Counted from the first letter of the stretch, positions 31,365 to 52,881 are shown. The stretch is DNA of 64,000 nt from IMGVR_UViG_3300028676_000003:248001-312000; one strand, 5' to 3'. Made by a program: numbers and translations. Notes: a model not told the origin generated them from the sequence alone.

Positions 31365-31420
31365 AGAGACTGTTACTAATTTATAGGACTCCGAGTGAGG
31401 GGAAGCGTAGAATTAGAATT
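31365..31420 (+). repeat. inter-tRNA motif, copy 1 (AGACTGTT..TAATTYATAG...GCGTAGAATTA)
   Basis: Further copies at 52482-52545 and 52826-52881. Confidence 0.75.
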
Positions 31421-31423
31421 TTT

Positions 31424-31496
31424 GGAGCAGAGGTGTTGATGGTAACATACTCCCCTGTCACGGGATAGATTGAGGGTTCGACTCCCTTGTGCTCCG
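31424..31496 (+). tRNA. tRNA-Asp(GTC)
   Basis: CTCCC-CTGTCAC-GGGAT. Confidence 0.85.
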
Positions 31497-31652
31497 CAAG
31501 TCTATTAGGGTCGGCTGGAGACAAAGAGACTAAAATCATAAGGGTTCTAGTAGGGGTTGTGAACCGTATAATGACACATGACGTTGGGAAGTATAGCCAA
31601 AATGACACTCGGAAAGACGAAGGTTTGATGTTGAACCATATCAACATAATTC

Positions 31653-31725
31653 GGATGTGAGGTCAAATGGTTAAGATATCACCCTGTCACGGTGTTTGGA
31701 GCGGGTTCGAATCCCGTCACATCCG
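31653..31725 (+). tRNA. tRNA-Asp(GTC)
   Basis: Loop CTGTCAC, acceptor GGATGTG/CACATCC. Confidence 0.85.
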
Positions 31726-31731
31726 CAAATT

Positions 31732-31862
31732 GGAAATGTTACCCCAAAGCATGAGATTAATCAGAATGCGAGTCTATCAATGATAACGAAACCTTGATAG
31801 ATTTAGGAATAAGGGTACCTCTAATGGGATTTCGTTTGCAGGTTCGAGTCCTGCCATTTCCG
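31732..31862 (+). ncRNA. tRNA-like RNA with an expanded interior
   Basis: Perfect acceptor GGAAATG/CATTTCC and T arm GCAGG-TTCGAGT-CCTGC, with about 100 nt between and no clean anticodon arm. Confidence 0.55.
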
Positions 31863-31944
31863 CAATAATGTAACAAAAAAAATTGAGTTATGAAAACAAT
31901 GCGTAAATTCAGTCTCTTCTAAGGTCAAATCCTTACAAGAGAAA

Positions 31945-32646
31945 ATGAGTAAAAACACAAAAAAAGAAAGTTATAAGCCTTTTATTAAGCTTATTAACGA
32001 AAGAGCTAAAATTTGGAAGCTTATCGATGATTTAGGTTACATCGAGTTAGAAGAACCTATTCATCACGGTTACGATTCGTTTTTCGTATTAAGAGACGAT
32101 ATTTCAAGAAGAAAAGATGCTCCTTTATTAGAAGATTTGTTAAAGAATTATACTAGTGTTGCATGGTGTAGAAATAAAGACTTCATTGTCAAAAGAAGAG
32201 GTAAGAAAGAAAAAATTGAACCTAGTCTTGTTCACGTAAGTGTAGCGGCATATTTGTTATTTTCACCAAAGAAACAAGAGTTCTTTACCAAGCACTTCAT
32301 TAGAGGTTGGCATAGTGTTCGAGAAGTATATTGTCTTAATTTACCAAGACACTATTACGTAATCAAAAAGAAAAAAAGTTACATTACACATAGAAAGGTA
32401 ATGGATGCTCAATTGCAAAGTGACTTGGACTTGGTTTATGACCAAATCAACGAAATCACAGAAGTTTCAAACCCTTATAACAATCCTTGTGGTTGGGATG
32501 TAAGATTTTGGAACAAGGCTTCAAGAAGAAAAGATAATGTTATAACTAGCAATATCAAAAACCACTTCGATGGAGAACTTGATAGTGATTTATTAGAATA
32601 TGGTCTTTCTGAGAAAGCAAGACATGGAGCAAATTGGTATCGATAA
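31945..32646 (+). CDS. basic hypothetical protein
   Basis: 233-aa K/R-rich ORF. Confidence 0.65.
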   Translation: MSKNTKKESYKPFIKLINERAKIWKLIDDLGYIELEEPIHHGYDSFFVLRDDISRRKDAPLLEDLLKNYTSVAWCRNKDFIVKRRGKKEKIEPSLVHVSVAAYLLFSPKKQEFFTKHFIRGWHSVREVYCLNLPRHYYVIKKKKSYITHRKVMDAQLQSDLDLVYDQINEITEVSNPYNNPCGWDVRFWNKASRRKDNVITSNIKNHFDGELDSDLLEYGLSEKARHGANWYR

Positions 32647-32863
32647 AATACAGAAATGGTTAACGATGTGACCTCTATTTATAAGTCATGTTGTTGCCAT
32701 ATGTAACAAAATTTAGATAATAACTCGGAGACGAGCATGCGAAAGGTACCCACAGAGGGTCTAAGTCCGATTGATACGATACATAAGAACAGTTTCATAG
32801 GTTCCCAGCTGAATAAGGTAAGAGGGTATAAAATCATATCGTTCAAAATCTAAATTTTTTAAT

Positions 32864-32935
32864 GGCCCGTTCGTCTAGGGGTTAGGACGACTGGTTTTCG
32901 ACCAGTAAACAGGGGTTCGATTCCCCTACGGGCTG
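32864..32935 (+). tRNA. tRNA-Glu(TTC)
   Basis: ACTGG-TTTTCGA-CCAGT. Confidence 0.9.
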
Positions 32936-33034
32936 CAATAATTGGTTGACGAAAATACTCTTGCTGGAACAAGGGTAGAAGTAGTTGGATATTATATATT
33001 TGAAGCAAGGATTCCAGTCTGAGCGGAGAGTATC

Positions 33035-33105
33035 TTGGTACTAGTTTAATTGGAAAAAACGGGTGCGCTGAGCATTTAATATGGGTTCGAGTCCCATGTA
33101 TCGAA
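33035..33105 (+). ncRNA. tRNA-like RNA with a 5-nt anticodon loop
   Basis: TTGGTAC/GTATCGA, D stem GTTT/AAAC, GGTGC-GCTGA-GCATT, T arm ATGGG-TTCGAGT-CCCAT. Confidence 0.6.
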
Positions 33106-33334
33106 CTAATTTCAACTGAAGATAAATGTAAGTATCGTGCTTAATAACCACGGAAACCTTGGTGAGGGGTCCATAGTCATCACTTATATCATTGCTAAGA
33201 ATGAGTATTTATTGTAAGATATTTAAAACATCATTTATTCGGCCAATGTGGTTGATTTATAAGTGATTAAATAGGGTGTAGAGACGTTTGATGCTCTACT
33301 AGGTATTCCACTTAGAAATGGATTGAAATTTTAA

Positions 33335-33408
33335 GGGGTCTTAGCTCAGCTGGCTAGAGCATCTGCCTTGCACGTAGAAGGTCGTGGGTTCGACTCCCAC
33401 AGGCTCCA
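33335..33408 (+). tRNA. tRNA-Ala(TGC)
   Basis: TCTGC-CTTGCAC-GTAGA, G3:U70. Confidence 0.9.
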
Positions 33409-33533
33409 CAAAGTTAACAAATACAAAAGTTCCCGAACGGTAGTAGGGCTTAGGTGAAGCGGAGTTCGAAACTCCAAATGAATCTGTTCGACTCAGGCTC
33501 GTGCTTGGTGTGCAAGAAACTAAGTTTGTTAAT

Positions 33534-33618
33534 GGGAGTGTAGCTCAGTTGGTAGAGCAGGATGTATAGGAATGCATACTTTAAATCTGTGTCAATGGTT
33601 CGATTCCATTCACTCTTA
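33534..33618 (+). ncRNA. tRNA-like RNA with an enlarged anticodon arm
   Basis: Canonical D arm (AGCTCAGTTGGTAGAGC) and T arm; about 20 nt in the anticodon-loop position. Confidence 0.6.
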
Positions 33619-33627
33619 CAAAATATT

Positions 33628-33700
33628 GGGGAAGTAGCTCAACTGGCTGAGCGTTACCTTTGCAAGGTAAAGGATGCGGGTTCGAATCCCGTCTTCTCCA
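33628..33700 (+). tRNA. tRNA-Ala(TGC)
   Basis: TTACC-TTTGCAA-GGTAA, G3:U70. Confidence 0.9.
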
Positions 33701-34104
33701 CTAAAAGTTTTAAAGATGGCAAAAACCGTTATAGATAAAGCGAAAGAGCTTATCGAAGAAGTAGGAAAAGAAAAAGCAATTGAGTATTTTCAGAAAAGAA
33801 TCAGTGATATCGGAGAACCTAAATCATTTGAGGATATTTGTATGATAACGGGTAACAAAACGGCCATAGCCTATATTAATGGCGAAATTAAATCAAAAAA
33901 GAAATAAAATGTTAGGAGTAGTAATTGAAGTTGTTGAAGGACCATTGAAACATACTAATGGTTATTCTGTTAAGGTTAAGGCAATGAATCCTGATGGAAA
34001 GGTATTTGATTACCAATTCATTAAGAATCATAAAGCTGATGCAGAGATTATAATTCCTGGTTGGAGTTGGGAAATGAAGTTTAAACGTAAAAATTGGATA
34101 TAAG

Positions 34105-34902
34105 ATGAGAACAAGAGTAGCACCGTCACCAACTGGAATTTTCCATTTGGGAACACTTAGAACAGCATTATTAAACTATTTACTGGCTAAGGCAAACGGT
34201 GGTGATTTCATTCTCCGTATTGATGATACCGATGTAGTTAGAAATGATGATAAATACATAGATTATATCTATGACCAAATGAAACACTTTGGCCTTAATC
34301 ATGACCTAACGTTTAAACAGTCAGATAGACTAGCACGATATGCAGAAGTTGCCAATAAGATTGGTTTTGCTTCACCTGATGGAATAAAGTTGAATATGGG
34401 TGACTATGATATGGTTATTCTTAGAACAAATGGATATCCAACATATAACTTTGCAAGTATTCTTGATGATTATGACTACGATATCACTGATTTTGTCAGA
34501 GGTGTAGACCACATCAACAATCTAGATAAACAAAAACATATTTGGGACTTGATTGCAAGTGTTTATGGTGATAAGCCTTTTCCAAATGTAATTCATGCTG
34601 GATTGTTATTTGATGGGAAGAGTAAGTTATCGAAAAGAAGCGGAAACGGAACGACAGCTGACTATGTTGACTTTGATAAGGATGCATTATTAAATTGGTT
34701 GTTTAAGATGGGTTGGTCTCATAAGGACCCGAATTTCGATAGAGATTTTCCTTTTTTACTGATGATTCAAATGATTGCTTTCTTTAATGATGGTAATATC
34801 ACGAAATCTAACTGTAAGATTGATAGACCAAAGCTTGATTTTTTGAATAAAAAACATAAAAACTTTAAGAAATTCAAAGAAAGTTTTGGTGAATTCAAAT
34901 AA
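34105..34902 (+). CDS. glutamyl-tRNA-synthetase-family catalytic domain only (GluRS/GluQ-like)
   Basis: RTRVAPSPTG.FHLGTLR, LRIDDTD, PTYNFA..DD..ITD.VRG.DH, KLSKR. 265 aa with no anticodon-binding domain. Confidence 0.85.
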   Translation: MRTRVAPSPTGIFHLGTLRTALLNYLLAKANGGDFILRIDDTDVVRNDDKYIDYIYDQMKHFGLNHDLTFKQSDRLARYAEVANKIGFASPDGIKLNMGDYDMVILRTNGYPTYNFASILDDYDYDITDFVRGVDHINNLDKQKHIWDLIASVYGDKPFPNVIHAGLLFDGKSKLSKRSGNGTTADYVDFDKDALLNWLFKMGWSHKDPNFDRDFPFLLMIQMIAFFNDGNITKSNCKIDRPKLDFLNKKHKNFKKFKESFGEFK

Positions 34903-34941
34903 AAGTTATACCTTTGTCCTCTAATCTTAAAACATAAGAAA

Positions 34942-35472
34942 ATGGCAAAAGTTGAAATAAATGCAGTTTTTTACGATTCTCCTGAAGGAGCATATGTATA
35001 TTGTGTCTTAGACCCAAGTATTGATGGTGAAGAATATGTTAAAAATTTAAATGAAAGAGCCGCTGAATATAATAAAGATGTTGAAAAATATCAAGAATTG
35101 ATTCAAGAGCTAAAAACCAAACATAAATGGTTTGCTTCATTTAAAGAAGTTACTGGTGCGGATATGTTAAATGCTCGTGAACCAAAATTTCCAGCCAATA
35201 TGCCAAAAGGTGTAAAGAATGCTGAAGAAGCATATCCTGAAATTGCCCTTGAAAGACAAAGAAGACGTGAAATAAATGCTGTAAATATTGAAATTAACAA
35301 TAAATACGGTAATGAAGTTAGGGAAAAAGTTGAACTAGAATCGAAAGATTTAAAGGATGAAATTAAATCAAAATGGGGTGAATTTACTGGCTTTGATAGT
35401 CATTTTCATTCATTTGAAAAGATTTACTATAAATTCTTTTTATCACCATGTGATTATATAACAAAAGACTAA
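34942..35472 (+). CDS. hypothetical protein
   Basis: ORF after promoter at 34909. Confidence 0.6.
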   Translation: MAKVEINAVFYDSPEGAYVYCVLDPSIDGEEYVKNLNERAAEYNKDVEKYQELIQELKTKHKWFASFKEVTGADMLNAREPKFPANMPKGVKNAEEAYPEIALERQRRREINAVNIEINNKYGNEVREKVELESKDLKDEIKSKWGEFTGFDSHFHSFEKIYYKFFLSPCDYITKD

Positions 35473-35976
35473 TGAGATGTAGTATTCGTAGGTTAATCGG
35501 ACTTAATTTCATGTCAGAATCAATTGACATGAAAAATAAGAAGAAGTTACAAAGACAATTTAAGATTCTTTTTGAGCATACAGGGTTATTAGACCCAAAT
35601 ACAAAGCTTACAAAAGAAGAAGATAAAGCAACTGGAGCAATCCTAAAGATACTCATTCAAATGGGTCATACTAATTGGTATGCAAAGTTTGATGTGTTGG
35701 TATTGTATGAGACTCTTGTACAATTTCTAAAAGACATTTGGACAGACAAAAAAATAATAAATAAGGATGGTGTAGAAGAAGACTTGAACGATAAAGCTGT
35801 TTTAGCTTTTATTAGCATCCATTTTAAAGGAATAAAAAGACAATGAAAAATTTACAATTAGGGGGTGACGGCTTGGGAGCCATCTAACCAAACAACAACG
35901 TATTGATTTACGAAAACAAGAAATCGGAAGTAAGCATGACAGAAAGCTTACCAAATACTCAGACAGTTTTAACGAA

Positions 35977-36357
35977 ATGTTTACCTTTTTCCTACAATCA
36001 TATAGGAAAGGACTCTTGACCTTTTGTGGGTCCATTGTCAAGGTAGAATTCGATATCAACTCAACAGAAGCTAAGAACACCTTTAGGAAATTCGACAACG
36101 GAGACTATAAGATGAAAGATATTGTTTCAAAGCATCCTAATATGGTCAAGGCTGTAATCATAGGTAAAAAAGCTTGGGGACTTTGGGTAGGCCAATGGAC
36201 TGATGGTATAGTTGAAGGAACCTTCACACCGATGGAAATACTTCAAGAATTTGAGGATAAGGGTATTGTGATACCTAAGCCTTTATTGAATGAATTTAAC
36301 AAGATGATTGTAAAAAAATTCAAAAAAAAGTACCCCGAAAGTTTTGTTATTAAATAA
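35977..36357 (+). CDS. hypothetical protein (frame open from about 35869; true start uncertain)
   Basis: A protein-like open frame extends upstream of the ATG. Confidence 0.5.
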   Translation: MFTFFLQSYRKGLLTFCGSIVKVEFDINSTEAKNTFRKFDNGDYKMKDIVSKHPNMVKAVIIGKKAWGLWVGQWTDGIVEGTFTPMEILQEFEDKGIVIPKPLLNEFNKMIVKKFKKKYPESFVIK

Positions 36358-36847
36358 ATTAGTTGTACCTTTGTAATGTAATAAAAATTAAACTATGAGA
36401 AATTTAAAAAAGCGATTTTTTCAATATTTGGCCGATTATATAATCGAGAGGTTACGATTCGAGTTGAATAGTCAATTCTATAATGAGAAGGTTTTTTACT
36501 TCTATTTAGAAATGGGAATATGTTTAGATTTTTATTGTACGGAGTATTTTAACGTAGAATTAGACTAAAAAAAAAATAAGTTTTAGTTGCAAGTTAAAAA
36601 AACGTTTCGTACCTTTGTTAAAGAAAAAGAAATTAGGTTAGGTTAGGTTAATAAATTTTGGTTTTTGGTTTTGAATTGCGTTTGTCACAAGTAAATGTTA
36701 ATTGATTTCGGTAAGATTAGCATTCGTCATGCTTGTGACGTTTTTAGATTGAATTAGGTTAAACTCGTTAGTTCTATTAGGGCCTGTCGTCATGGCAGAT
36801 AATCATAGGGAATTACGTCAGAACGTCCTACAGACGTAACTAACACT

Positions 36848-36919
36848 GGAGATGTAGCTCAGTTGGTAGAGCGGCCCCTCAAACGGGGTGTGTCGCAGGT
36901 TCGAACCCTGCCGTCTCCA
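36848..36919 (+). ncRNA. tRNA with a 6-nt anticodon loop
   Basis: Canonical body, GCCCC-TCAAAC-GGGGT. Confidence 0.7.
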
Positions 36920-37077
36920 CTTCTTCGATGAAAGGTGGTGCCTTCCTTTAAATCTCGGCATAGATTTTTGTTAGTTCAGCCTAGGTTCCAAGACCAAAAA
37001 ATGAATTGGTGTTTATTACTTTAAACCAAGTTAAAGAAAAGTATTCGGGTAACAACTTGGAAATTGTTACTCATCAG

Positions 37078-37150
37078 GGTGGGATAGCTCAGTTGGTAGA
37101 GCACTAGCCTGAAGAGCTAGGTGTCGTTGGTTCGAATCCAACTCTCACCA
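37078..37150 (+). tRNA. tRNA-Phe(GAA)
   Basis: CTAGC-CTGAAGA-GCTAG. Confidence 0.9.
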
Positions 37151-37463
37151 CATGGTTAAAATATATCAGGACCTAGGAAGCCTTATATGTGGATACCTTG
37201 AGTGGTTCACTACTCCCAATGTGAAGTTGGTGTCGTACTTTAACCGACACGGGTTTATGTCTTTTTAACCCTGTCTTCCAAGAGAAAAACAAAAGATTGG
37301 TTACATGACATGACCAAGAAGCGTTCAAAAAATGTCATCGAGTAGTAACTTGGAATTACTACTCAATTTTCGGGAATGACGTTAGGGCTAACAGGTTGCA
37401 AGACTGAATACTAGTAGTTGAGGAGTTCGACTCTCCTCTTCCCGTCAAAAATTAAAATTAAGT

Positions 37464-37637
37464 ATGGCAACGATTGCAAAAAAGTCTAGACAAGCTAGAG
37501 CGTTAAATGTTCTTGAACAACAACTGAAAAATGGTGTAAAAACCCAAAAGAAAACAACAAACACAAAGATTCCTTTGACTGACGCTGATGTTAAGCGTAT
37601 CAACAAAGAAATCGAAGTTCTAAAAACACGAGTGTAA
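37464..37637 (+). CDS. small basic protein (57 aa)
   Basis: MATIAKKSRQARALNVLEQQLK...; below the ORF track cut-off. Confidence 0.55.
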   Translation: MATIAKKSRQARALNVLEQQLKNGVKTQKKTTNTKIPLTDADVKRINKEIEVLKTRV

Positions 37638-37643
37638 TAACAC

Positions 37644-37688
37644 GTTGCTTTGTCAGCCCACGTATAGGTTCAAGTCCTGTAAGCAACA
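37644..37688 (+). ncRNA. tRNA minihelix (acceptor stem + T arm only)
   Basis: GTTGCTT/AAGCAAC-A with ATAGG-TTCAAGT-CCTGT, joined by 13 nt. Confidence 0.55.
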
Positions 37689-37893
37689 CTAGGAAGATGG
37701 ATATTTCATCCTTCTAATACACTGGGTATTAGAGCATTAAAAAGTTCGTTAATTTATTGGGAATCAAGAAGTTACAAACAAAAATAAATGAAAATAATTC
37801 GTTTATTCACTTGACTTTTGATGTTAATTATAGTATCTTTGTATTATAAATTAGTATAATATAATAACATAAATAAACACACAAAAAGAAAGA

Positions 37894-38529
37894 ATGGCAG
37901 TAACAAAACCAACAGCGAAAAAAGGAAGCGTAGCTACAGAGCAAATCGTAGGGCAAGCGGCTCAACAAATCACTAAAGCAGTAGCAGAATTAGCAGGAGC
38001 TACAAAAACTATCGAAACACTTGTTTCTCAATCTGAGGAATTAACACTTTTGGTAGCTAACAAAGAAGAACAAATTAAAGATTTAGATGTTCAATTCGCA
38101 GAAAAAGAGCGTCAATTAAACGTTAACTTGGATTTAAGTTTCAAAGCTAACGCTGAGAAAATGGTAAGCGAAAATTTATCTGCAAATGGTAAAGTAGCTA
38201 TCTCTTCTACAGAATTGAAAGAATTACGTTCTGAGTTAGAAACTGTAAAATCAGGTACAGAAGCATTAGTGAAAAAAGAGACTGCAATCATTGCGTCTAC
38301 GTTGAAATCTCAACACGAGAATGAAATCAAATTGATTCACTCTGAAAACAAAGCTATTGCCGCTGAAAACGCTGCTAAGTTAGGTTCGTTAACAAAACAA
38401 AACGAGTTCTTAGAAGAGCAAGTAACTAAATTGTACTTACAATTAGACGCTGAAAGAGCGGCTGGTACAGAAAGAGCAAAAGCTGGTTCAATCGGGAACA
38501 TCACTGTTGGAGAAACAGGTCGTAAGTAA
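37894..38529 (+). CDS. coiled-coil hypothetical protein
   Basis: A/E/K/L-rich helical protein; promoter at 37833. Confidence 0.7.
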   Translation: MAVTKPTAKKGSVATEQIVGQAAQQITKAVAELAGATKTIETLVSQSEELTLLVANKEEQIKDLDVQFAEKERQLNVNLDLSFKANAEKMVSENLSANGKVAISSTELKELRSELETVKSGTEALVKKETAIIASTLKSQHENEIKLIHSENKAIAAENAAKLGSLTKQNEFLEEQVTKLYLQLDAERAAGTERAKAGSIGNITVGETGRK

Positions 38530-38731: not shown

Positions 38732-38850
38732 ATAGTAGTCGTCTAGTGGACAAAGACACCGCCCCTGTATTCGTGTATGAGGTTCGACTCCTCTTTAGCA
38801 GTGGTGGTATGACGTAGGTGGAAACATTGGTTCAAATCCAATCTGCTGTA
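38732..38850 (+). ncRNA. Glu/Asp-type tRNA body with an ~50-nt insertion in the anticodon loop
   Basis: ATAGTAG/CTGCTGT, D arm GTCTAGTGGACAAAGAC; the CCGCC/GGTGG stem encloses a second T-arm (GAGG-TTCGACT-CCTC). Confidence 0.6.
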
Positions 38851-39023: not shown

Positions 39024-39094
39024 ACTTCTGTCGTCTAAGTGTTAGGATGCCCTCGTTGTAGAGGGTGATAGTGGTTCAAATCCATTCGGAAGTG
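39024..39094 (+). ncRNA. Glu-type tRNA body with a 6-nt anticodon loop
   Basis: ACTTCTG/CGGAAGT, CCCTC-GTTGTA-GAGGG. Confidence 0.65.
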
Positions 39095-39240
39095 CAAATA
39101 CTGACCTCCACTTCAGTAATTATTTCGTTTTTTAGAGGTGGCTCCCTTTCCACAATTGTGGATATAACCAAAAATTGCTGTGGCAGACCACGGGCATCTG
39201 ATAGGTCAACTATCTATACAGGGGGCGAAACTAAATGTTT

Positions 39241-43538: not shown

Positions 43539-43901
43539 ATGGAAGTAGTCGGAAAGATTAAAGAAGTAAATGCAGAACAACAAGTTAGTGCCGCATTTAA
43601 AAAAAGAGAATTAGTTGTTACAACTGATGAGCAATATCCTCAACACATTTTGATTGAGTTCAATCAAGATAAATGCGATTTGTTAAGCTCATACAAAAAA
43701 GGTGAAGCTGTTAAGGTTTCTATCAACTTAAGAGGAAGAGAATGGGTTAACCCACAAGGTGAAACTCGTTATTTCAACTCAATCCAAGGATGGAGAATTG
43801 AAAGAGTAGGTTCTGAAACACCTGCAACGCCTCAAGCAACTCCTGCTCAAGCATTTGAACCAGCTGTTAGCGGTGATGAGCCTGATGATTTGCCTTTCTA
43901 A
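43539..43901 (+). CDS. DUF3127 family (Bacteroidota SSB-like OB-fold) protein
   Basis: F.KRELVVTT.EQYPQ.I.IEF.QDK, INLRGREW, YFNSIQGWRIE, acidic DDLPF tail. Confidence 0.9.
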   Translation: MEVVGKIKEVNAEQQVSAAFKKRELVVTTDEQYPQHILIEFNQDKCDLLSSYKKGEAVKVSINLRGREWVNPQGETRYFNSIQGWRIERVGSETPATPQATPAQAFEPAVSGDEPDDLPF

Positions 43902-46055: not shown

Positions 46056-46404
46056 TAGAGCCATTTGGTTCTTTGAGTTGATACTTGGTAAAGGAATAAG
46101 GGGCCTAGCATTTTGGCCCTTTATCTTTGTACCATCGACAACAGTCGTTGATGAGGTTCTGCTAAATCACGAACGTATTCATTTAAAGCAACAACTCGAA
46201 ATGCTGATTATACCGTTTTATATATGGTATTTGATTGCATTAAGGCGAAAGGGTTATATGGGTATTAGCTTTGAAAAAGAAGCATACGCCAATGAGAGAG
46301 ACTTAGGTTATTTAACCAAAAGAAAGAATTATTCATTTTTAAAATATCAAAATGAAAATAGAAATAAACAAAATAAAAACAGTACCAAAGGGTTTAGGTT
46401 TTAA
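46039..46404 (+). CDS. HExxH-motif protein
   Basis: LNHERIHLKQQ ... ISFEKEAY. Confidence 0.65.
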   Translation: MLIVSDRAIWFFELILGKGIRGLAFWPFIFVPSTTVVDEVLLNHERIHLKQQLEMLIIPFYIWYLIALRRKGYMGISFEKEAYANERDLGYLTKRKNYSFLKYQNENRNKQNKNSTKGFRF

Positions 46405-47527
46405 TTTCTGCGTTTACGGTGAACCATCTGAAGAAATTCAAAAATGGTGTAAGTATTGGGATTTTAAAACAGAACCATCAGGTCCATATACCAATATTAT
46501 CCTTACAGATGATGTTGACATTAAAAATATCTTTGTTGGTCCTAAGAAATACCATTATATTGATGGTTTTAGCCCAAATCTTAACAAGAACCTACATGTA
46601 GGTCACTTATCAAATCTTGTATTAGCAAATGCGTTCCAACACTTGGGTCTTGGAGATGAATTTATCTCGATATTTGGTGATACGCTAAATGGTGAGGTTA
46701 CCAAAGATGAGGCTTATTACAATTTCCTTAAAATGACCAAGTTTTTTGGTTATAAGGTTGATAAAGAGTATTTTGCTTCTGAAATGAAGCTTGATGAAAA
46801 GCTTTTAAAAGACGGCCAAGGTGACTATGAAGGTTCAAAGGTATTTGACTTAGAAGATGAACAAATCGTAGGTATTAAATCCAGCGGAGCAACAACATAC
46901 TTCTATCAAGACGTAGCACTAGCTAATGAATTGAGTGCTTCTACCTTGTATCTAACTGGCTTGGAGCAAGAAAATCATTTTAATTCGCTTAAGAAGTTAT
47001 TTCCAAATAACAATCATATCGGTCTTGGACTTGTTTATCTTGATGGTAAAAAGATGTCTAGCAGTGAAGGAAATATCATTTATATGAATGAGTTCATTCA
47101 TGGACTTATGGAAAAGTTTAATCATGATGCTGGTGTTGTAGCTAATATTATTATTGGACAAATCCTTAAATCTGAGCCAAAGTCAAAGAAAACAATTGAT
47201 TCTAGTCTTATAGATAATCCAAGATTATCATTAGGATTATACTTGAGCTACACGTTAGCACATGTTAAGAGTTGTGGTGTCACAACCAAGCAGATTTATA
47301 AGTATCAATCTAAAAAGTTACAATTTGCTGAATTAAGAGCTAAAACAAACTTATCACCAAATGTCTTATTTGATGAATTGGTGAGCCATTGTAAACATAT
47401 CAACGCTTTATATGAGACTCATTATATCAAGGGGAATGAAGAGAACATTGAGTTGTTTTCTAATTTGATTTCTGACTTGGAGTTGGGTATGTTGAGAGTG
47501 GGTATGTATTCAGTAGAAAAAGTTTAA
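46352..47527 (+). CDS. argS: arginyl-tRNA synthetase (compact)
   Basis: FSPNLNK.LHVGH, KS.G.TTY..QD, EQ..HF, KMSSSEG, YL.Y..A; C-term LGM...G. Confidence 0.85.
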   Translation: MKIEINKIKTVPKGLGFNFCVYGEPSEEIQKWCKYWDFKTEPSGPYTNIILTDDVDIKNIFVGPKKYHYIDGFSPNLNKNLHVGHLSNLVLANAFQHLGLGDEFISIFGDTLNGEVTKDEAYYNFLKMTKFFGYKVDKEYFASEMKLDEKLLKDGQGDYEGSKVFDLEDEQIVGIKSSGATTYFYQDVALANELSASTLYLTGLEQENHFNSLKKLFPNNNHIGLGLVYLDGKKMSSSEGNIIYMNEFIHGLMEKFNHDAGVVANIIIGQILKSEPKSKKTIDSSLIDNPRLSLGLYLSYTLAHVKSCGVTTKQIYKYQSKKLQFAELRAKTNLSPNVLFDELVSHCKHINALYETHYIKGNEENIELFSNLISDLELGMLRVGMYSVEKV

Positions 47528-47685
47528 AAATATTTCAAAAAAGGCTTGTTTTTTAATTAAAAATGATGTACCTTTGCTCTAACGAAACACATTTATTCTT
47601 TTAGTTGATATTTATAGTAAAATAAAATTACAGTTTTAAAGAAAATACAAGATTGTAGTTATACTTAAATACCAAAACATGGATA

Positions 47686-48141
47686 GTGAAGAAAAGAGTG
47701 ACACGAAAAATGATGGCGACTATCAGTCTAATGATAGCGACCTTCCTAAACCCTTTTGGGTTCGACATATTGGTTTACAAACTGACAGAGTTGACAAACG
47801 ATTATTGGACTACAATGTATGTTCTATATTCATTGGCCTTTCTATCATTTTGCTTAGCTTATCCATTTTTTAGATATGGAAAAAGGCTAATTGGAAATTT
47901 ACTTATTACACTAGCGTTATTCCTTAACCCGCTGGGCTACGATATTATCGTTTATGGAATTACACTGTTAACTAAGAGCTATTGGATAACAATGAGTATT
48001 ATGTATGCTTTGGCTGTCATTTTCTTTGGATTATTTGTTCACTTGAGTGATATGGATTTGAAAAAGAAACTAAGAGTCAACACAAAGATAATAATTCGAA
48101 ACATTAAAAACAAACTTAAAAGCTATGAACAAGTTCAATAA
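47686..48141 (+). CDS. membrane protein with an internal duplication
   Basis: The unit FLNP.G.DI.VY..T.LT..YW.TM...Y.LA occurs twice. Confidence 0.65.
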   Translation: MKKRVTRKMMATISLMIATFLNPFGFDILVYKLTELTNDYWTTMYVLYSLAFLSFCLAYPFFRYGKRLIGNLLITLALFLNPLGYDIIVYGITLLTKSYWITMSIMYALAVIFFGLFVHLSDMDLKKKLRVNTKIIIRNIKNKLKSYEQVQ

Positions 48142-48544
48142 TTTTTTTAACAAGTTTTTCGGAAAAAAAACCGAACAACCTAAAAAACCGATTAATCAAC
48201 TACCACAACCTGATGATGCATTTATCGAAAGCATTATGGGTTCATTAAAGCTAATGAAGGAGCTGAGTGAAAACAACGGAGACCCAAGTGTTTCTTTAGG
48301 ACCACCTGACAGAATTGACTATTCTGAAAGAGATGGATTGTATTTCAGAGACCTTGTATGGATTCAAAATGGTGGTAAAGGAGAAATCCACAGCCAAGAA
48401 ATGTCAGATGTTCCATTTGACAGAGAAGAATTAAAGGTAAAAGAAAATAAGCCTGAAACTCTTGAAGACCGTTTAGCTGACGCATTGAAAAATGAAGATT
48501 ACGAGGCGGCCGCTAGTCTAAGAGACGAAATGAATAAAAAGTAA
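48125..48544 (+). CDS. UVR-domain protein
   Basis: C-terminal L..AL.NEDYE.AA.LRDE. Confidence 0.7.
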   Translation: MNKFNNFFNKFFGKKTEQPKKPINQLPQPDDAFIESIMGSLKLMKELSENNGDPSVSLGPPDRIDYSERDGLYFRDLVWIQNGGKGEIHSQEMSDVPFDREELKVKENKPETLEDRLADALKNEDYEAAASLRDEMNKK

Positions 48545-48627
48545 AAAAAAAAGTTAAAATAAATTTGGTAGTTTAAAATAATATTTGTACCTTTGTAATG
48601 TAAAAATATTAACAAATAAATTAAACT

Positions 48628-49035
48628 ATGAAAAAATTTTTATTAATTGGATTATTCTTAATCTTTAGTTTACCTTCGTTTTCACAGGCATTAGCAAATG
48701 GCTATTACTACAAATCGGATATCAAAGTATATTCAAGTGGTACATCAAACACTTATACATATCACTTCTATGTGAATGCAAGTGGTGAGATTAGACAAAT
48801 TGATTTTGCTAAAAACCAATACATGTCATTCAAGACATATGGTACTGTATCTAACGCTCAATCAAGTGCTTATACTTGGGCCAATGATGGTGGTATTTGG
48901 TCAGAAACACAAACATTTGTGTTTACCAAAGACAAATCAACTGGTGACCTTAGTGTCTTCTTGATGAGAGTAGTACAAAATGAGGGTCAAGACCCTTGGC
49001 AAAGCTACGGTGTTGGAGTTGTTGAAAAACTCTGA
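48628..49035 (+). CDS. secreted hypothetical protein
   Basis: Signal peptide ending FSQ. Confidence 0.6.
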   Translation: MKKFLLIGLFLIFSLPSFSQALANGYYYKSDIKVYSSGTSNTYTYHFYVNASGEIRQIDFAKNQYMSFKTYGTVSNAQSSAYTWANDGGIWSETQTFVFTKDKSTGDLSVFLMRVVQNEGQDPWQSYGVGVVEKL

Positions 49036-49098
49036 GGGAGCTTAGTATTAAGAAAAATATAGTTGGTTATCAATTCTTACTTAGTAGAATTGAAACAA

Positions 49099-49315
49099 GG
49101 GGAATCGTTGTAAGGTAAGCATGTACTGTGGAGAACGGTATGCAATCAAGACGAGTATCAATAATAGGTGAGGATGGTGTACAACAGAGCCATTAACGAT
49201 TGATACTGGTGGAGATAGTTCAGAAGATACCTAAGAAATCACTGGTTAGCGCAATCAGAATGAACTAAGGGATGATATGGGTGAAAGCTTGGGGGTTCGA
49301 GTCCTTCATTCCCTA
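49099..49315 (+). ncRNA. ~215-nt RNA with a tRNA-like acceptor and T arm
   Basis: GGGGAAT/ATTCCCT-A and GGGGG-TTCGAGT-CCTTC, with a multi-hairpin interior. Confidence 0.55.
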
Positions 49316-49387
49316 CTAGAAAAAAAATAAAAAATAATTGGTAAAACACTTGACTTGTAAAGAAAATTGTCGTACCTTTGTAGTATA

Positions 49388-50195
49388 TTAATAAGATGTT
49401 GGTTCGCCCATGCTTTTTAACATAAGGCCGCTTATGGTCTTCAGGATAAACATAGTGATATGTAGAAAGCGATTTAGCGGAAGCAAGATTGCGTTGGGAA
49501 TTTATTACCAATCCGAGTAAGCGATGATAAACGCAGTGTTTATGTAAAGGCAACAAGAGACAAAATCTGTTGGAGTTGGAAGTAAACATTATAGCCCAAA
49601 TTTTGATTCATGGGTTATTGAGTACGAAAGTATAATAGAGGTTTATCAGGATTTGGTGAATAACTGTAAAAGGGGAATAAGCTGGGTCCAGTATTTAGAT
49701 TATGGTGTAGCTGAAAGGTGATATTAATCGAAGGTACCATGTTCGAGAGAGCATATCGGGGTGTCGTTAGCTGGGCTACTCAAAAGGTAGTACGTTAGCA
49801 AATCTGAGGACACATCCTGAACTGAAATGAATCGATGCAATTTATTTAGGTTTTTAACCTGAAATATCTTTTAAGAAAAGGAAATTTTATAAAAAGCAAA
49901 AGTTCCTCAGAACATGATTTGAAAAATGAGTTATACTGTTGTAAAATACAGTTGTTGCTAGGCCGCAAGCCAAAGTGACAAAATAAAGTAAGTAGTTCTA
50001 AGCTAATAGCCCGCAAGCTATGCAGACTCGCAAGGTCAGTCGGATGAAAATGGAGTTTATATAGAATCATGTAGTGATTGCAGAATCGTATATCTGTCTC
50101 ATTGTTGACTATTCCTGTAGCAATATAGGTGTGTGTAACAAACCGAAAGGTTTCAAAACGTCAACAGTATAGCTGAACACTCAGGCGACTACAAA
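49388..50195 (+). ncRNA. large structured ncRNA, GOLLD-like
   Basis: About 800 nt with no plausible + ORF and its own promoter (49350-49381). Many GNRA-capped hairpins (GCAA, GAAA) and a CTCAAAAGG element, next to tRNAs. Family assignment is from memory only. Confidence 0.55.
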
Positions 50196-50253
50196 ATTTT
50201 GGGGATAACCTTTAATCGGTTCATAAGGCGTAAAACCTTATATCCCCACACAT

Positions 50254-50326
50254 TCCGTGTTAGAGCAGTCAGGTAGCTCGCTCCCGTGTGAGGGAGAGGT
50301 CAGGGGTTCGAATCCTTTACACGGTA
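50254..50326 (+). ncRNA. initiator-like tRNA body with a 6-nt anticodon loop
   Basis: 1:72 mismatch, D stem GAGC/GCTC, CTCCC-GTGTGA-GGGAG. Confidence 0.65.
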
Positions 50327-50542
50327 CTAATTTTTACTAGACATATTAATTAAATTCGGGAGCAATACATATAGTATTGAATAGGTGGAAACCCTTATGC
50401 TCCCACTAGGCTTCGTAATTAGGAAATATGGATGCGGTTAAAAGAAACGACCAAAGATAAGGTTTCACGGCAAAAGGCTCTATTCGTTAACCAGCGAGCT
50501 TTTACTTATCTTTGGAAATTTCAAAAAAAAATGACAAAAGGC

Positions 50543-50574
50543 TTGCTTTTTACAAAAATAGTTAGTACCTTTGT
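50543..50574 (+). promoter_or_regulatory. promoter upstream of leader 3
   Basis: TTG ... TACCTTTGT; ATATTTAT at 50625. Confidence 0.8.
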
Positions 50575-50665
50575 ATAAGAAATAAAAAAATAAACAGAAA
50601 AACAAAACTTTTGCTAAAAGCAATATATTTATAATAAACGTAGAAATACACAACAAACAGAAATT

Positions 50666-50773
50666 ATGACAACAAGTACCACATATCAAACGCAAAAACA
50701 ACAACCTAAAGGCGGGAAGCCTTATGGCTTGGCTGGGTGTGTCAACAACTTGTTTGACTTAGTTACAATATAA
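50666..50773 (+). CDS. leader peptide 3 (MTTSTTYQTQKQQPKGGKPYGLAGCVNNLFDLVTI), Thr/Tyr/Gln/Lys/Pro/Gly-rich attenuator
   Basis: 35-aa ORF; codons 2-21 are 19/20 T, Y, Q, K, P or G. Confidence 0.85.
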   Translation: MTTSTTYQTQKQQPKGGKPYGLAGCVNNLFDLVTI

Positions 50774-50797
50774 TTAGTAGTAATACTGATTTTGTAG

Positions 50798-50832
50798 ACC
50801 CAGCTTAATGTAAAAATTAGGCTGGGTTTTTT
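50798..50832 (+). terminator. intrinsic terminator/attenuator of array 3
   Basis: ACCCAGCTTAAT-loop-ATTAGGCTGGGT plus T-run. The leader carries an identical GGCTGGGT at 50731-50738. Confidence 0.85.
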
Positions 50833-50837
50833 CATTT

Positions 50838-50910
50838 CGGGGGATAGCTTATATGGTAAAGCACTGACCGTTGGGGTCAGGAGAATGAGGTTCGAGTACT
50901 CATCTACCGA
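50838..50910 (+). tRNA. Pro-type tRNA body with an atypical anticodon loop (CGTTGGG)
   Basis: C1:G72, A73; CTGAC-CGTTGGG-GTCAG lacks U33. Confidence 0.6.
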
Positions 50911-51024
50911 CAAACACAAAACGGGTTAACCTCTGCGAACAGAAAGTACGAGGATGGAACAATTGGAAAGATATCGCTAGTTGCAAAGGGTTCGATTCCC
51001 TATAACCTGACAAAAGAATTAATC

Positions 51025-51315
51025 ATGAGTAAAGGAAATTGTGAATTATGTGAACGAGAGAAGGAATTGACCTTTCATCACCTAATACCTCAAATCAACC
51101 ACTCGAAGAATGCCTTTCAAAGGTTATTCAGTAAAGAGGATATGAAAACAAGAGGTCTTATGTTATGTAGAGAGTGTCATTCAATGATTCATCGAACGCT
51201 AGACAACAAAACACTCGGATTAGAGTACAATACAAAAGAATTATTACTCGGACATGAAGGAATCTTCAAGTTTGTAGAATGGGTTAAAAAACAAAACAAA
51301 AAAGTAAAAAAATAG
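51025..51315 (+). CDS. HNH-family protein
   Basis: CELC, TFHHLIP, LCRECHSMIH. Confidence 0.75.
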   Translation: MSKGNCELCEREKELTFHHLIPQINHSKNAFQRLFSKEDMKTRGLMLCRECHSMIHRTLDNKTLGLEYNTKELLLGHEGIFKFVEWVKKQNKKVKK

Positions 51316-51387
51316 AACAAATGAAAAATATTAAACGTATAAAGAATAAACAGTAACCACCTTCAAATCATGAGGGTGATATGATAT

Positions 51388-51458
51388 GCCCTCTAAGCTT
51401 TAAGGTGAAGCACGATACTTTTAATATCGGGAAAATGGTCCAATACCATTAGGGGGTA
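51388..51458 (+). tRNA. tRNA-Lys(TTT)
   Basis: CGATA-CTTTTAA-TATCG; divergent T loop. Confidence 0.75.
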
Positions 51459-51477
51459 CAAGTTTTAATAAACGAAT

Positions 51478-51550
51478 GCCCTCGAAACATTGCTGGCGAT
51501 GTACTCCGCTTTTAACGGAGGAATAATTGGTTCGATTCCAATCGGGGGTA
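51478..51550 (+). tRNA. tRNA-Lys(TTT)
   Basis: CTCCG-CTTTTAA-CGGAG. Confidence 0.85.
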
Positions 51551-51569
51551 CAAGACGAAAGTCGAATAC

Positions 51570-51644
51570 TCTCCTATGGCTGACTGGGTAAAGCACCATA
51601 CTTTTAATATGGCATCAATGTCGGTTCGAACCCGACTGGGAGAA
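51570..51644 (+). tRNA. tRNA-Lys(TTT)
   Basis: CCATA-CTTTTAA-TATGG. Confidence 0.85.
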
Positions 51645-51706
51645 CAAATTAAGTTTTTAACCTTTACTTTTGTTTAAAAGCGCATATTATTGTAATAAAA
51701 TTTATT

Positions 51707-52147
51707 ATGAAAATATGTGGAACATGTAAAGTACCGAAATCCGAAGAAGATTTCAACAAGAATAAAAGCAAACCAGATGGTTTAAATAGCATTTGTAGAG
51801 AATGTAGTAACAAACGGTCTAAACGATATTATACTGAGAATAAAGAACATCATATTGGTGTTATTAAAGATAGGAAGGTTAAAACATTAATCGATACTAG
51901 AACAAAAATTTTTGAGTATTTTAAAGAAAACCCGTGTATTGATTGTGGTGAAACAGACCCAATAGTACTAGAATTTGACCATCGAGACGATGTTATCAAA
52001 GAGAGAAATATTGCTGATTTAGTCGGAAATAGTTGTTCTTGGACGATGATTAAGAAAGAGATTGACAAGTGTGATGTAAGGTGTGCAAATTGCCACAGAA
52101 GAAGAACAGCAATCCAACAAGGTTGGTATAAAGGAGTTATATTATGA
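51707..52147 (+). CDS. HNH homing-endonuclease-like protein
   Basis: N-term CxxC Zn finger, CIDCG....LEFDH, KC...CANCHR. Confidence 0.8.
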   Translation: MKICGTCKVPKSEEDFNKNKSKPDGLNSICRECSNKRSKRYYTENKEHHIGVIKDRKVKTLIDTRTKIFEYFKENPCIDCGETDPIVLEFDHRDDVIKERNIADLVGNSCSWTMIKKEIDKCDVRCANCHRRRTAIQQGWYKGVIL

Positions 52148-52400
52148 CAGAACAAGAAAAGCACATAGCAGATAGTATGACATTATTTGCCGCTAACATA
52201 GCAGATTTTGAAGTAGGTGATTTAGTAAAAGAGGCGAATGGTATCGTGTCCAAGATAACGAACAAAACCATCAACTCTATTGAAGTGGAAATTGACAAGC
52301 TACCACTTAAAAAAAATGCGTCAAAAGAAAATATCGGGATTAAAGCAAGACAATGGTTTACCATGGAAAATTTTAATCGTAGATTTAAAAAGTAATTATT

Positions 52401-52476
52401 CGGGTGGTATAGGAGCCAGGTTTATCTAGTCGCACTTGGACTGCGAATCACGTGGGTTCGAATCCCACTCACCCGA
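52401..52476 (+). tRNA. tRNA-Pro(TGG)
   Basis: TCGCA-CTTGGAC-TGCGA. Confidence 0.85.
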
Positions 52477-52481
52477 CGAGA

Positions 52482-52545
52482 AGAGACTGTTATTAATTCA
52501 TAGAACACCATACTTAGTAAGTACTGGAAGCGTAGAATTAAAAAT
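52482..52545 (+). repeat. inter-tRNA motif, copy 2
   Basis: AGAGACTGTTATTAATTCATAG...GAAGCGTAGAATTAA. Confidence 0.75.
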
Positions 52546-52547
52546 TA

Positions 52548-52623
52548 CGAGATGTGGACTAATTGGCTAAGTCGCTTGCTTTGGGAGCAAGACATCGTGC
52601 AGGTTCGAGTCCTGTCATCTCGA
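52548..52623 (+). tRNA. tRNA-Pro(TGG)
   Basis: CTTGC-TTTGGGA-GCAAG. Confidence 0.9.
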
Positions 52624-52745
52624 CATACTGGGTTTTGATACCGATTTACCGTTAGGAAACGGAGCGTGAAGGGGTTCGTCAAACAAACTCTGCTCCCGAA
52701 ACAGAATTGAAGTGGGGTATGACGGATGCAGAGAGAGGCATATAT

Positions 52746-52817
52746 GCGGGAGTAGCTCAATGGTAGAGTTCCTGATTTCCAATCAGGTTGTTGCGAGTTC
52801 GAGCCTCGTCTTCCGCT
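52746..52817 (+). tRNA. tRNA-Gly(TCC)
   Basis: CCTGA-TTTCCAA-TCAGG. Confidence 0.9.
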
Positions 52818-52825
52818 CGAAGATA

Positions 52826-52881
52826 AGACTGTTGCTAATTCATAGGGTACCAAGGTAAAAACTGCGTAGAATTAGAAAATT
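52826..52881 (+). repeat. inter-tRNA motif, copy 3
   Basis: AAGACTGTTGCTAATTCATAG...TGCGTAGAATTAG. Confidence 0.75.

Follow-up and report, generated by a model that had tools for sequence, protein, structure and literature searches.

A roughly 50-nt folded RNA motif with about 20 almost unchangeable nucleotides was found between neighboring tRNA genes of a 368,549-bp phage genome and of over a hundred other phages; it matches no Rfam 15 family, no paper describing it was found, and it may represent either a new small phage RNA or a new self-cleaving RNA. The analyzed window was a 64,000-nt stretch of this genome (IMGVR_UViG_3300028676_000003:248001-312000), in which the motif occurs three times on the + strand, with cores at 31368-31416, 52485-52541, and 52827-52875, and no further copy was found in the window by a covariance model or elsewhere in the genome. 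The same motif is carried by at least 111 IMG/VR loci (83 distinct sequences) and by the cultured Bacteroidota phages Cellulophaga phi4:1 and phi17:2 and Tenacibaculum Gundel_1, at 1–3 copies per genome. In contrast, only 3 true hits were found in 596 Gb of cellular genomes, all on contigs of metagenome-assembled genomes.

A preliminary description of the window had reported a conserved motif at 31365, 52482, and 52826, always between the 3′ end of one tRNA and the 5′ end of the next, and this observation was confirmed. The pattern AGACTGTTRYTAATTYATAG matched exactly three times in the window, at 31367, 52484, and 52826, while 0.09 matches were expected from shuffles and 0 of 100 shuffles reached three; the first two previously given starts are therefore 2 nt early and the third is exact. 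The pairing proposed earlier, including a compensatory change in copy 2, also holds, as the helix arms are CUAAUUU/GAAUUAG in copy 1, UUAAUUC/GAAUUAA in copy 2, and CUAAUUC/GAAUUAG in copy 3, so that copy 2 carries a true compensatory change at the outermost pair (U-A in place of C-G), whereas copy 1 has a U-G wobble at the innermost pair.

The flanking tRNAs, all on the + strand, were identified by ARAGORN and the Rfam tRNA model. Copy 1 lies in the tRNA-Glu(UUC) to tRNA-Asp(GUC) spacer (31364-31423). The upstream tRNA-Glu (31291-31362) ends at the discriminator base A31362 with no encoded CCA, and is followed by a 5-nt trailer, CAAGA (31363-31367). The core then comprises GACUGUU (31368-31374), A (31375), the helix 5′ arm (31376-31382), AUAG (31383-31386), a variable hairpin (31387-31404), GCG (31405-31407), UA (31408-31409), and the helix 3′ arm (31410-31416), with a covariance-model score of 69.7 bits (E = 9.6e-13); an A/U-rich leader, AAUUUUU (31417-31423), precedes tRNA-Asp (31424-31496).

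Copy 2 lies in the spacer (52478-52547) between two different types of tRNA-Pro(UGG), the upstream one (52401-52476) being the first tRNA of the dense array 52401-54525 and the downstream one spanning 52548-52623. After the trailer CGAGAAGA (52477-52484), its core comprises GACUGUU (52485-52491), A (52492), the 5′ arm (52493-52499), AUAG (52500-52503), a variable hairpin (52504-52529), GCG (52530-52532), UA (52533-52534), and the 3′ arm (52535-52541), followed by the leader AAAUUA (52542-52547), and it scored 69.5 bits. Copy 3 lies in the spacer (52819-52881) between two tRNA-Gly(UCC) genes (52746-52817 and 52882-52955). After the trailer CGAAGAUAA (52818-52826), its core comprises GACUGUU (52827-52833), G (52834), the 5′ arm (52835-52841), AUAG (52842-52845), a variable region (52846-52863), GCG (52864-52866), UA (52867-52868), and the 3′ arm (52869-52875), followed by the leader AAAAUU (52876-52881), and it scored 60.1 bits.

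Since three copies alone prove little, the helix was then evaluated in related phages. Of 123 matches to a pattern that leaves the helix free, 77 had 7 of 7 pairs, against 0 of 59 for a control pattern with the spacing off by one, and fourteen different helix sequences were seen. The absence of covariation in homologs had been named beforehand as a result that would count against the motif, but the outer four helix pairs do covary, with 45 cells changed on both sides, 0 of 500 shuffles as high, and 98.5% of cells paired; RNAalifold found the same helix independently. The consensus is A|GAYUGUU-A-[7-bp helix]-AUAG-[8–32 nt, weak hairpin]-NCN-UA-[helix 3′ arm]-A, in which the inner UUC/GAA pairs, GAYUGUU, AUAG, and the lone C are nearly invariant and the 8-nt spacing is obligatory. 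In detail, when only the helix was fixed, the 5′ block was GACUGUU 57 times, GAUUGUU 5 times, and GACCGUU twice, AUAG was kept in 63 of 64, and the triplet varied (GCG, GCA, UCA, GCU) but nearly always kept its middle C. Searches that forced a change at AUAG position 3 or 4 found no true variant. The motif is also far more conserved than the tRNA-Pro genes beside it, which are only about 54% identical to each other. These results indicated strong purifying selection on an RNA structure.

More than 90% of copies are wedged between two same-strand tRNA or tRNA-like genes, 3–10 nt after one and 2–8 nt before the next. Among 92 unique copies, 69 have a called tRNA within 14 nt upstream and 68 downstream, while most of the remainder abut tRNA-like genes missed by ARAGORN or are cut by a locus end, and about 5 at most on each side lack a tRNA neighbor. 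The spacers themselves are not tRNAs, as no tRNA call by ARAGORN or the Rfam model covers them. However, 314 of 974 spacers in the same arrays are only 0–10 nt long, so processing does not need a structured spacer. Other conserved, structured, non-tRNA spacer families also recur in these arrays. No shared phage partner was found: Gundel_1 and the present phage share only a dUTPase, an SSB, and one weakly matching hypothetical protein, and no gene family sits near the motif in more than 27 of 116 loci.

To assign the motif to a known class, Rfam 15 was searched. The window at gathering thresholds gave only tRNAs, and the spacers at E ≤ 10 gave only one chance CRISPR-repeat hit, on the opposite strand and at 12 bits against a threshold of 38, with no match to hammerhead, twister, twister-sister, pistol, hatchet, hairpin, HDV, preQ1, or ToxI; for 14 related loci, the 150 best-scoring of 200 gathering-threshold matches were all tRNAs. 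The theta/HDV-like P3-L3 core ([AG]CC-U-YC-NCGN-GGY, from supplementary file 4 of PMC10879173) is absent from all three copies, and a descriptor-style scan of about 3.5 Mb of loci and the whole genome gave 0 hits. Nor does a P1 3′ strand exist, since no AACAGUC-like partner of the 5′ strand lies in the motif, whose shortest variable region is 8 nt (in the locus L101), and AACAGUC is not enriched in spacers. A 7-bp helix with covarying outer pairs and a near-invariant C two to three nucleotides before its 3′ strand are present, although this C is preceded by a variable nucleotide and any catalytic role for it is conjectural.

The interpretation offered earlier, a candidate ribozyme or processing element of no recognized class, is therefore only partly supported: a genuine, strongly selected, structured RNA motif tied to tRNA genes in phages and matching no known class is supported, a processing element remains possible, and a ribozyme is a live rival rather than the demonstrated answer. 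The simple idea that it cuts the 3′ end of the upstream tRNA is weakened by the variable distance from the discriminator base, by the almost constant need for a tRNA downstream as well, by the short spacers of the same arrays, and by the simple fold.

The reading tentatively preferred, though held with less than even confidence, is that the motif is a discrete, phage-specific small structured RNA carried as cargo inside polycistronic tRNA transcripts. In this view, the spacer would be transcribed with the tRNAs and set free as an RNA of about 60–70 nt when host RNase Z or 3′ trimming cuts at the upstream tRNA and RNase P at the downstream one, as with spacer-derived small RNAs of E. coli tRNA operons. 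The invariant 5′ strand GAYUGUU, exactly 8 nt upstream of AUAG, probably folds back so that CUGU pairs with AUAG, which would give an H-type pseudoknot in which 2 nt cross the 7-bp helix, whose inner end carries the invariant loop (AUAG opposite N-C-N-U-A) and the small variable hairpin. This compact core would bind or act on a component common to the Bacteroidota-type hosts, not a phage protein. The helix, the conserved nucleotides, and the placement between tRNAs were shown by the analysis and the fold only in part, while the release of the RNA is predicted from established tRNA processing, its stable accumulation and its action on a host component are inferred, and any catalysis is hypothetical. 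The selected structure, the same-strand tRNAs on both sides, by which RNase P and RNase Z would set its ends, the short spacers that show processing does not need it, the lack of a shared phage partner, and the restriction to phages support this reading, and the recurrence of other structured spacer families suits a cargo reading. However, no RNA ends were observed, as the one RNA library that held part of the array gave contigs only and none over the motif, and no target was found, AACAGUC being also absent from a Bacteroidota 16S rRNA. The pseudoknot has no compensatory support, since the C3-to-U and AUAG-to-GUAG variants keep wobble pairs but two GACCGUU variants and one AUUG variant break a pair. 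Moreover, an invariant junction C, a compact fold, and a position next to phage tRNAs fit a ribozyme equally well, and near-invariance of 20 or so nucleotides is unusual for a simple protein-binding site.

A new class of small self-cleaving ribozyme is the closest rival, possible but somewhat less likely. It would cut the polycistronic tRNA precursor inside the spacer, most plausibly at its own 5′ edge just before the G of GAYUGUU, as HDV-like and hatchet ribozymes cut at their 5′ edge, separating the two tRNAs and leaving a short trailer on the upstream one, with the invariant C of N-C-N acting in catalysis. If so, it would be the smallest and simplest natural self-cleaving ribozyme yet, with one 7-bp helix, a 4-bp pseudoknot, and a junction cytosine, evolved in environmental Bacteroidota phages as a functional counterpart of the gut-phage theta ribozymes with an unrelated core. 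The precedent of theta ribozymes directly 3′ of phage tRNAs, about 90% of these phages having predicted Bacteroidota hosts (PMC10879173), the cultured carriers that also infect Bacteroidota, an outer layout that parallels theta, the about 20 near-invariant nucleotides in junctions, the fixed 8-nt spacing, and a possible pseudoknot, the low copy number, and the lack of a shared phage protein, so that the RNA may act alone, favor this reading. Against it, besides the failed class searches, the 3–10 nt distance to the tRNA end (most often 8 nt) varies, so it could not make the mature 3′ end, and the motif is almost never found after the last tRNA of an array, where a 3′-end ribozyme should still be useful. 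The second hairpin is weak, 36 of 92 variable regions having no predicted stable fold, which makes the fold simpler than any known natural self-cleaver, and few new RNA motifs turn out to be ribozymes.

Less likely still, the motif may be a non-catalytic cis-acting element of the precursor serving the downstream tRNAs, such as a recognition site for a host endoribonuclease, a read-through element protecting the long untranslated array from termination in the manner of put or nut sites, or a folding insulator between neighboring tRNAs. A downstream tRNA is nearly obligatory, while a few copies follow an ORF rather than a tRNA (loci L072/L127 and L101), and reliance on host machinery would fit the lack of shared phage proteins. 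A mild bias to the first spacers was found, with 18–20 copies in the first spacer against about 13 expected, and the motif follows the first tRNA of the array in phi4:1, Gundel_1, and window copy 2. However, this bias is weak, short spacers work in the same arrays, an insulator would not need 20 invariant nucleotides, and the helix is too short for RNase III.

A DNA-level element, namely a promoter, a terminator, a homing-endonuclease or recombinase site, or a mobile intergenic cassette like the promoter-stem-loop cassettes of T4-type phages, is very unlikely. Homing and HNH endonuclease genes are the commonest neighbors (27, 21, 16, and 15 of 116 loci for the four largest such gene clusters), and one overlaps the 5′ end of the tRNA-Pro gene upstream of the motif in Gundel_1; TAGAAU looks like a -10 box, the motif is more conserved than its neighbors, as a mobile unit would be, and mobile regulatory cassettes are reported in T4-type phages (PMC2839356). 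However, the motif is always on the tRNA strand and its helix covaries, so pairing of a transcript is what is selected, the final T of the would-be -10 box is lost in helix variants such as GAAAUUC and GAACAUA, and no conserved -35 box sits at a fixed distance because the middle region varies from 8 to 32 nt. There is also no G+C-rich stem followed by a U-tract, and the motif does not fit the integron attC R-box sequence. Chance similarity or a functionless duplicated spacer, suggested only by the three window copies and by two of them lying between tRNAs of the same isotype, is refuted by the shuffles, the 111 loci and three cultured phage lineages, the sequence-unrelated flanking tRNAs, and the covariation.

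Among known systems, phage nut sites and rRNA boxA/boxB signals likewise place a conserved single-stranded 8-mer before a hairpin inside a long untranslated operon, but GACUGUUA does not resemble the boxA GUUCUUUGAAAA read in the 16S rRNA leader of a Labilibaculum (Bacteroidota) rRNA operon, and no N-like protein is shared between carrier phages. Pistol, hatchet, twister, twister-sister, and hammerhead ribozymes are small, often phage-associated, and have conserved junction nucleotides and pseudoknots, and pistol also contains AUAG and AAGCG strings; however, their order of elements differs and the present motif has fewer helices. Spacer- and trailer-derived or tRNA-punctuated small RNAs, such as E. 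coli 3′ETS-leuZ and the metZWV spacers or the tRNA-linked miRNAs of a herpesvirus, also sit between or beside tRNAs, so that their ends would be set by RNase P and by RNase Z or RNase E, but they are lineage-specific and act by long base-pairing or as miRNA precursors, whereas this motif is a compact fold with about 20 invariant nucleotides, shared by unrelated phages and without an identified complementary target. The theta ribozymes (Kienbeck et al., 2024; PMC10879173) are likewise small (56 nt in one example), lie just 3′ of tRNA genes lacking an encoded CCA, occur in Caudoviricetes whose known or predicted hosts are mostly Bacteroidota, and have a parallel outer layout of a 6–7-nt strand starting with G (7 nt here), 1–3 linker nucleotides, usually A (one here), a 7-bp closing helix, and a C-led junction (C-N-(U/A)-A, with a variable nucleotide before the C in the present motif) just before the helix 3′ strand. 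In contrast, the present motif has no P3/L3 core (GCC-U-CC-NCGY-GGC), P1 3′ strand, or P1.1 pair, has an invariant 5′ strand where theta has a covarying P1, starts 3–10 nt from the tRNA end where theta mostly starts within 1 nt, almost always has a tRNA downstream too, and is found in soil, peat, freshwater, and marine phages, whereas theta is mainly in gut phages.

The window is bases 248001-312000 of a single 368,549-bp virus record that is rated complete. Its G+C content is about 34% and nearly all ORFs lie on the + strand, and the best DNA matches were found in peat metagenomes. ARAGORN predicted 40 tRNA genes in the window and 62 in the genome. The 20-nt pattern of the preliminary description matched exactly three times in the window, at 31367, 52484 and 52826 on the + strand, against an expected number of 0.09 from shuffled sequences, and neither a scan of the rest of the genome nor a covariance model search of the window found a further copy. 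Each copy fills the spacer between two same-strand tRNAs, namely Glu to Asp, Pro to Pro, and Gly to Gly, respectively. The two arms pair in all three copies, with a compensatory U-A at the outer pair of the second copy and a U-G at the inner pair of the first. The observation of a paired motif in three inter-tRNA spacers was confirmed.

To evaluate how widespread the motif is, IMG/VR was scanned with a pattern that leaves the helix unspecified (GACTGTT-N8-ATAG-N8..38-GCGTAG). At least 118 loci were returned, and 77 of the 123 matches have 7 of 7 helix pairs, whereas a control pattern with 9 instead of 8 unspecified bases returned 60 loci and none of its 59 matches has 7 of 7 pairs. The 8-nt distance between GACUGUU and AUAG is therefore obligatory, although one variant with a 10-nt distance and a longer helix exists (L081; L numbers denote the collected phage loci). 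In all, at least 111 IMG/VR loci carry a perfect copy, comprising 83 distinct core sequences and 14 different helix sequences; as all collection scans were pattern-based and limited in the rows returned, these counts are lower bounds and the variation is under-sampled. Further, blastn found the motif in three cultured phages, Cellulophaga phages phi4:1 and phi17:2 and Tenacibaculum phage Gundel_1, which carry a single copy after tRNA-Pro. In phi4:1 and Gundel_1, it lies directly after tRNA-Pro(UGG) and before tRNA-Glu or tRNA-Gln, and the covariance model, which was itself built from pattern-selected sequences, confirmed both at 35 and 48 bits. In contrast, a blastn hit in the 642-kb uncultured phage LR756502.1 was not confirmed by the covariance model, and a look-alike family in loci L183, L271, L277 and L279 lies inside coding sequence with no tRNAs nearby and is unrelated. 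In 596 Gb of bacterial and archaeal genomes, a stringent pattern gave 15 hits, of which only 3 are true, all on contigs of metagenome-assembled genomes.

The consensus consists of an A followed by GAYUGUU-A-[7 bp]-AUAG-[variable]-N-C-N-U-A-[7 bp]-A. When only the helix sequence was fixed in the search, the 5' block was GACUGUU 57 times, GAUUGUU 5 times and GACCGUU twice, and AUAG was kept in 63 of 64 copies, while the triplet was GCG 34 times, GCA 15, UCA 10 and GCU 3, so that only its middle C is kept. The outer four helix pairs covary, with 45 cells carrying changes on both sides and 0 of 500 shuffles as high, and the signal collapsed when the partner column was slid, while the inner three pairs (U-A, U-A, C-G) are nearly invariant. 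RNAalifold predicted the same helix. The variable region is 8-32 nt long, most often 15-18 nt, and forms only a weak predicted hairpin, as its mean folding energy was -1.6 kcal/mol against -0.9 for shuffles (p=0.02) and 36 of 92 regions have no predicted stable fold.

The nearly invariant CUGU can pair with AUAG, and with 2 nt left to cross a 7-bp helix this would be the standard geometry of an H-type pseudoknot and would explain the fixed spacing. Searches that forced a change at AUAG position 3 or 4 returned only chance matches, indicating that these positions are effectively invariant, and among natural variants six keep a wobble pair, three break a pair and none is compensatory. The pairing is neither proved nor disproved by these data, and we treat the pseudoknot as a model rather than a result. 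A pseudoknot between the trailer and the variable region was rejected, because the mean longest helix was 3.61 against 3.56 in shuffled pairings. As for a cis or trans partner of GACUGUU, its complement AACAGUC ranked only 5859th among spacer 7-mers and was absent from a Bacteroidota 16S rRNA, and a possible mimicry of 16S rRNA helix 23 (GCRUAGA) was dropped since only 7-13-nt matches with E of at least 0.1 were obtained.

The genomic context was then assayed on 92 unique copies, of which 69 have a called tRNA within 14 nt upstream and 68 downstream. Most of the remainder abut tRNA-like genes that ARAGORN missed or are cut by a locus end, these neighbours including sequences with T-loop matches 27-30 nt upstream, a recurrent odd tRNA-Lys-like gene and type-II tRNA 5' ends, and about five at most on each side lack a tRNA neighbour. 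A recurrent tRNA-like gene of about 72 nt, which begins GCCCUCUAGGCUUUAAAGUGAAGC and ends AGGGGGUAC, has the anticodon loop CUUUUAA and an aberrant T-loop, and is missed by ARAGORN, flanks many motif copies (L074:8640-8836, L108, L316, L353, L356, L374 and L139). tRNA-Pro(UGG) is upstream in 33 of 69 cases, yet these tRNA-Pro genes are only about 54% identical to one another; the motif is therefore more conserved than its neighbour and is not a recently copied cassette.

The trailer from the discriminator base to the first G of GAYUGUU is 3-10 nt, most often 8 nt, starts with C, is never CCA and usually ends in A, while the leader is 2-8 nt and A/U-rich. These lengths rest on ARAGORN, whose tRNA ends run one base past the Rfam ends in the four cases compared (the three window copies and L068). 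None of the upstream tRNA genes checked (69 motif-linked trailers) encodes CCA, and the base after the discriminator is C in about 95% of about 1000 tRNAs in the window and related loci, most often followed by AA (CAA). All of these tRNAs must therefore be trimmed and receive CCA from a nucleotidyltransferase.

Spacers in these arrays are bimodal in length, with 314 of 974 being 0-10 nt and a second peak at 50-100 nt, and several other conserved, structured spacer families recur in the arrays, three of them in this window. Four other inter-tRNA spacers of this phage, at 21641-21748, 23426-23512, 53190-53265 and 53346-53404, belong to further conserved spacer families shared with other phage tRNA arrays, which are a 94-108-nt family (8 loci), a family with a T-arm-like hairpin GUGGUUCAAUCCCAC (4 loci), a Gln-to-Tyr family sharing UUCAGCAA (6 loci) and a Tyr-to-Tyr family (2 sequences), and none has an Rfam match at gathering thresholds. 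The arrays seem to carry several kinds of non-tRNA RNA. Several more spacers, at 30642-30700, 30775-30836, 21824-21879 and 53488-53549, are also 56-62 nt long and fold into predicted hairpins; the Phe-to-Phe spacer has a 7-bp helix, UUCUAUG/CAUAGAA, preceded by GACUGAG, which loosely echoes the layout of the motif, but no relatives were found among the loci collected. In addition, two longer inter-tRNA gaps, at 21389-21565 and 21961-22196, each contain a small ORF that starts with ATG (about 45 and about 70 codons), the first with CxxC...C-type cysteines; small proteins appear to be interleaved with the tRNAs.

Some tRNA calls in the window are themselves unusual (33534-33619, 39024-39095, 50254-50327, 31130-31201, 54452-54525 and 23513-23596), as some have anticodon loops of 8 or 6 nt (listed as 'agga', 'tg' and 'gt') and others have the A34 anticodons His-AUG, Gly-ACC and Leu-AAG; they may be degenerate copies, frameshift-type tRNAs or prediction errors. 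The Rfam tRNA model also matched a 119-nt stretch at 38732-38850 (36.7 bits) that ARAGORN does not call and that may be a tRNA with an insertion or intron. Outside the window, at 228804-228879 of the genome, ARAGORN called a tRNA with anticodon CUA, an amber suppressor type that it labels Pyl; theta ribozymes were linked to suppressor tRNAs and stop-codon recoding.

No gene family lies near the motif in more than 27 of 116 loci, and the most frequent neighbours are homing and HNH endonucleases, a phosphoesterase and a QueC-like protein. In the window, an ORF at 54500-55219 that matches homing endonucleases (phrog_314, E=1e-36) starts inside the 3' part of tRNA-Gly(ACC), which spans 54452-54525, and in Gundel_1 a homing or HNH endonuclease gene overlaps the 5' end of tRNA-Pro. 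PHROG annotation of 20 ORFs around the arrays found no tRNA-processing enzyme, the nearest match being one weak polynucleotide-kinase-like HAD phosphatase at 28914-29435. Gundel_1 (79 kb, 10 annotated tRNAs, no annotated RNA-processing gene) and this phage share only a dUTPase, an SSB and one weak hypothetical match. The gene for the single-stranded-DNA-binding protein, at 43539-43898, encodes a product 62% identical over 125 residues to the Gundel_1 SSB, which hints at a Bacteroidota host or at gene exchange. Whatever the RNA does, it therefore does alone or with host machinery.

As to transcripts, a 227-nt contig from a peat metatranscriptome library matched 53186-53409 without a mismatch over 224 nt (end of tRNA-Gln, spacer, tRNA-Tyr, spacer), so the array is present in an RNA library in unprocessed form, though DNA carry-over cannot be excluded; among the assembled contigs examined, there was no RNA evidence over the motif. 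The analysis demonstrates a new, phage-restricted, strongly selected structured RNA embedded between tRNA genes, and from established tRNA processing it follows that RNase P at the downstream tRNA and RNase Z or exonucleases at the upstream one would release a spacer RNA of about 60-70 nt. Whether that RNA is the functional product, whether it first cuts itself, or whether it acts in cis on the precursor is inferred from sequence alone, as are its accumulation and any catalysis. The preliminary suggestion of a candidate ribozyme or processing element is partly supported.

The need for tRNAs on both sides, the variable linkers, the many short spacers in the same arrays and the presence of other spacer families tilt us, tentatively, towards an excised cargo RNA. 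The theta precedent, the junction C, the compact core and the lack of a protein partner keep a new self-cleaving ribozyme close behind, as a possible reading. A cis-acting processing or read-through element comes third and appears unlikely; it is supported by the need for a downstream tRNA and by a weak bias to early spacers, but the motif does not resemble the boxA of a Bacteroidota rRNA leader. A sigma-70 or Bacteroidota-type promoter or a terminator was rejected, since the -10-like TAGAAU is not kept in helix variants, TAnnTTTG appears only in the roughly one in five copies whose leader is AUUU, and there is no U-tract. DNA-level readings in general are very unlikely, because the element is strand-specific and covaries.

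Phage tRNA arrays are usually read simply as extra tRNAs, whereas this motif, together with the other conserved spacer families seen beside it, shows that the gaps between the tRNAs carry their own strongly selected RNAs. If it is an excised small RNA, it would point to an unrecognised way for phages to deliver abundant small RNAs, which would act on a component shared by many Bacteroidota hosts. If it cuts itself, it would be a new ribozyme class and a second, independent case of RNA-catalysed tRNA-precursor processing in phages. Either reading is open to direct test, since cultured phages carry the motif and it is short enough for complete mutational and structural study.

Finally, the motif was compared with known RNA families. 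Rfam 15 gave only tRNAs at gathering thresholds, and nothing relevant at E<=10 on the spacers, while for 14 related loci the 150 best-scoring of 200 gathering-threshold matches were all tRNAs. Literature searches for the sequence strings, for tRNA-array ribozymes and for related topics found no description of this motif. The nearest precedent is that of the theta ribozymes (PMC10879173), but an HDV/theta fold was rejected because the motif has neither the core nor a P1 partner, and a descriptor-style scan found no theta ribozyme in any locus or in the genome. The theta descriptor rows show, in order, P1, J, P2, GCC, U, CC, ACGY, GGC, P1', GG, L4, CUAA and P2', and of this arrangement the motif shares only the outer frame.
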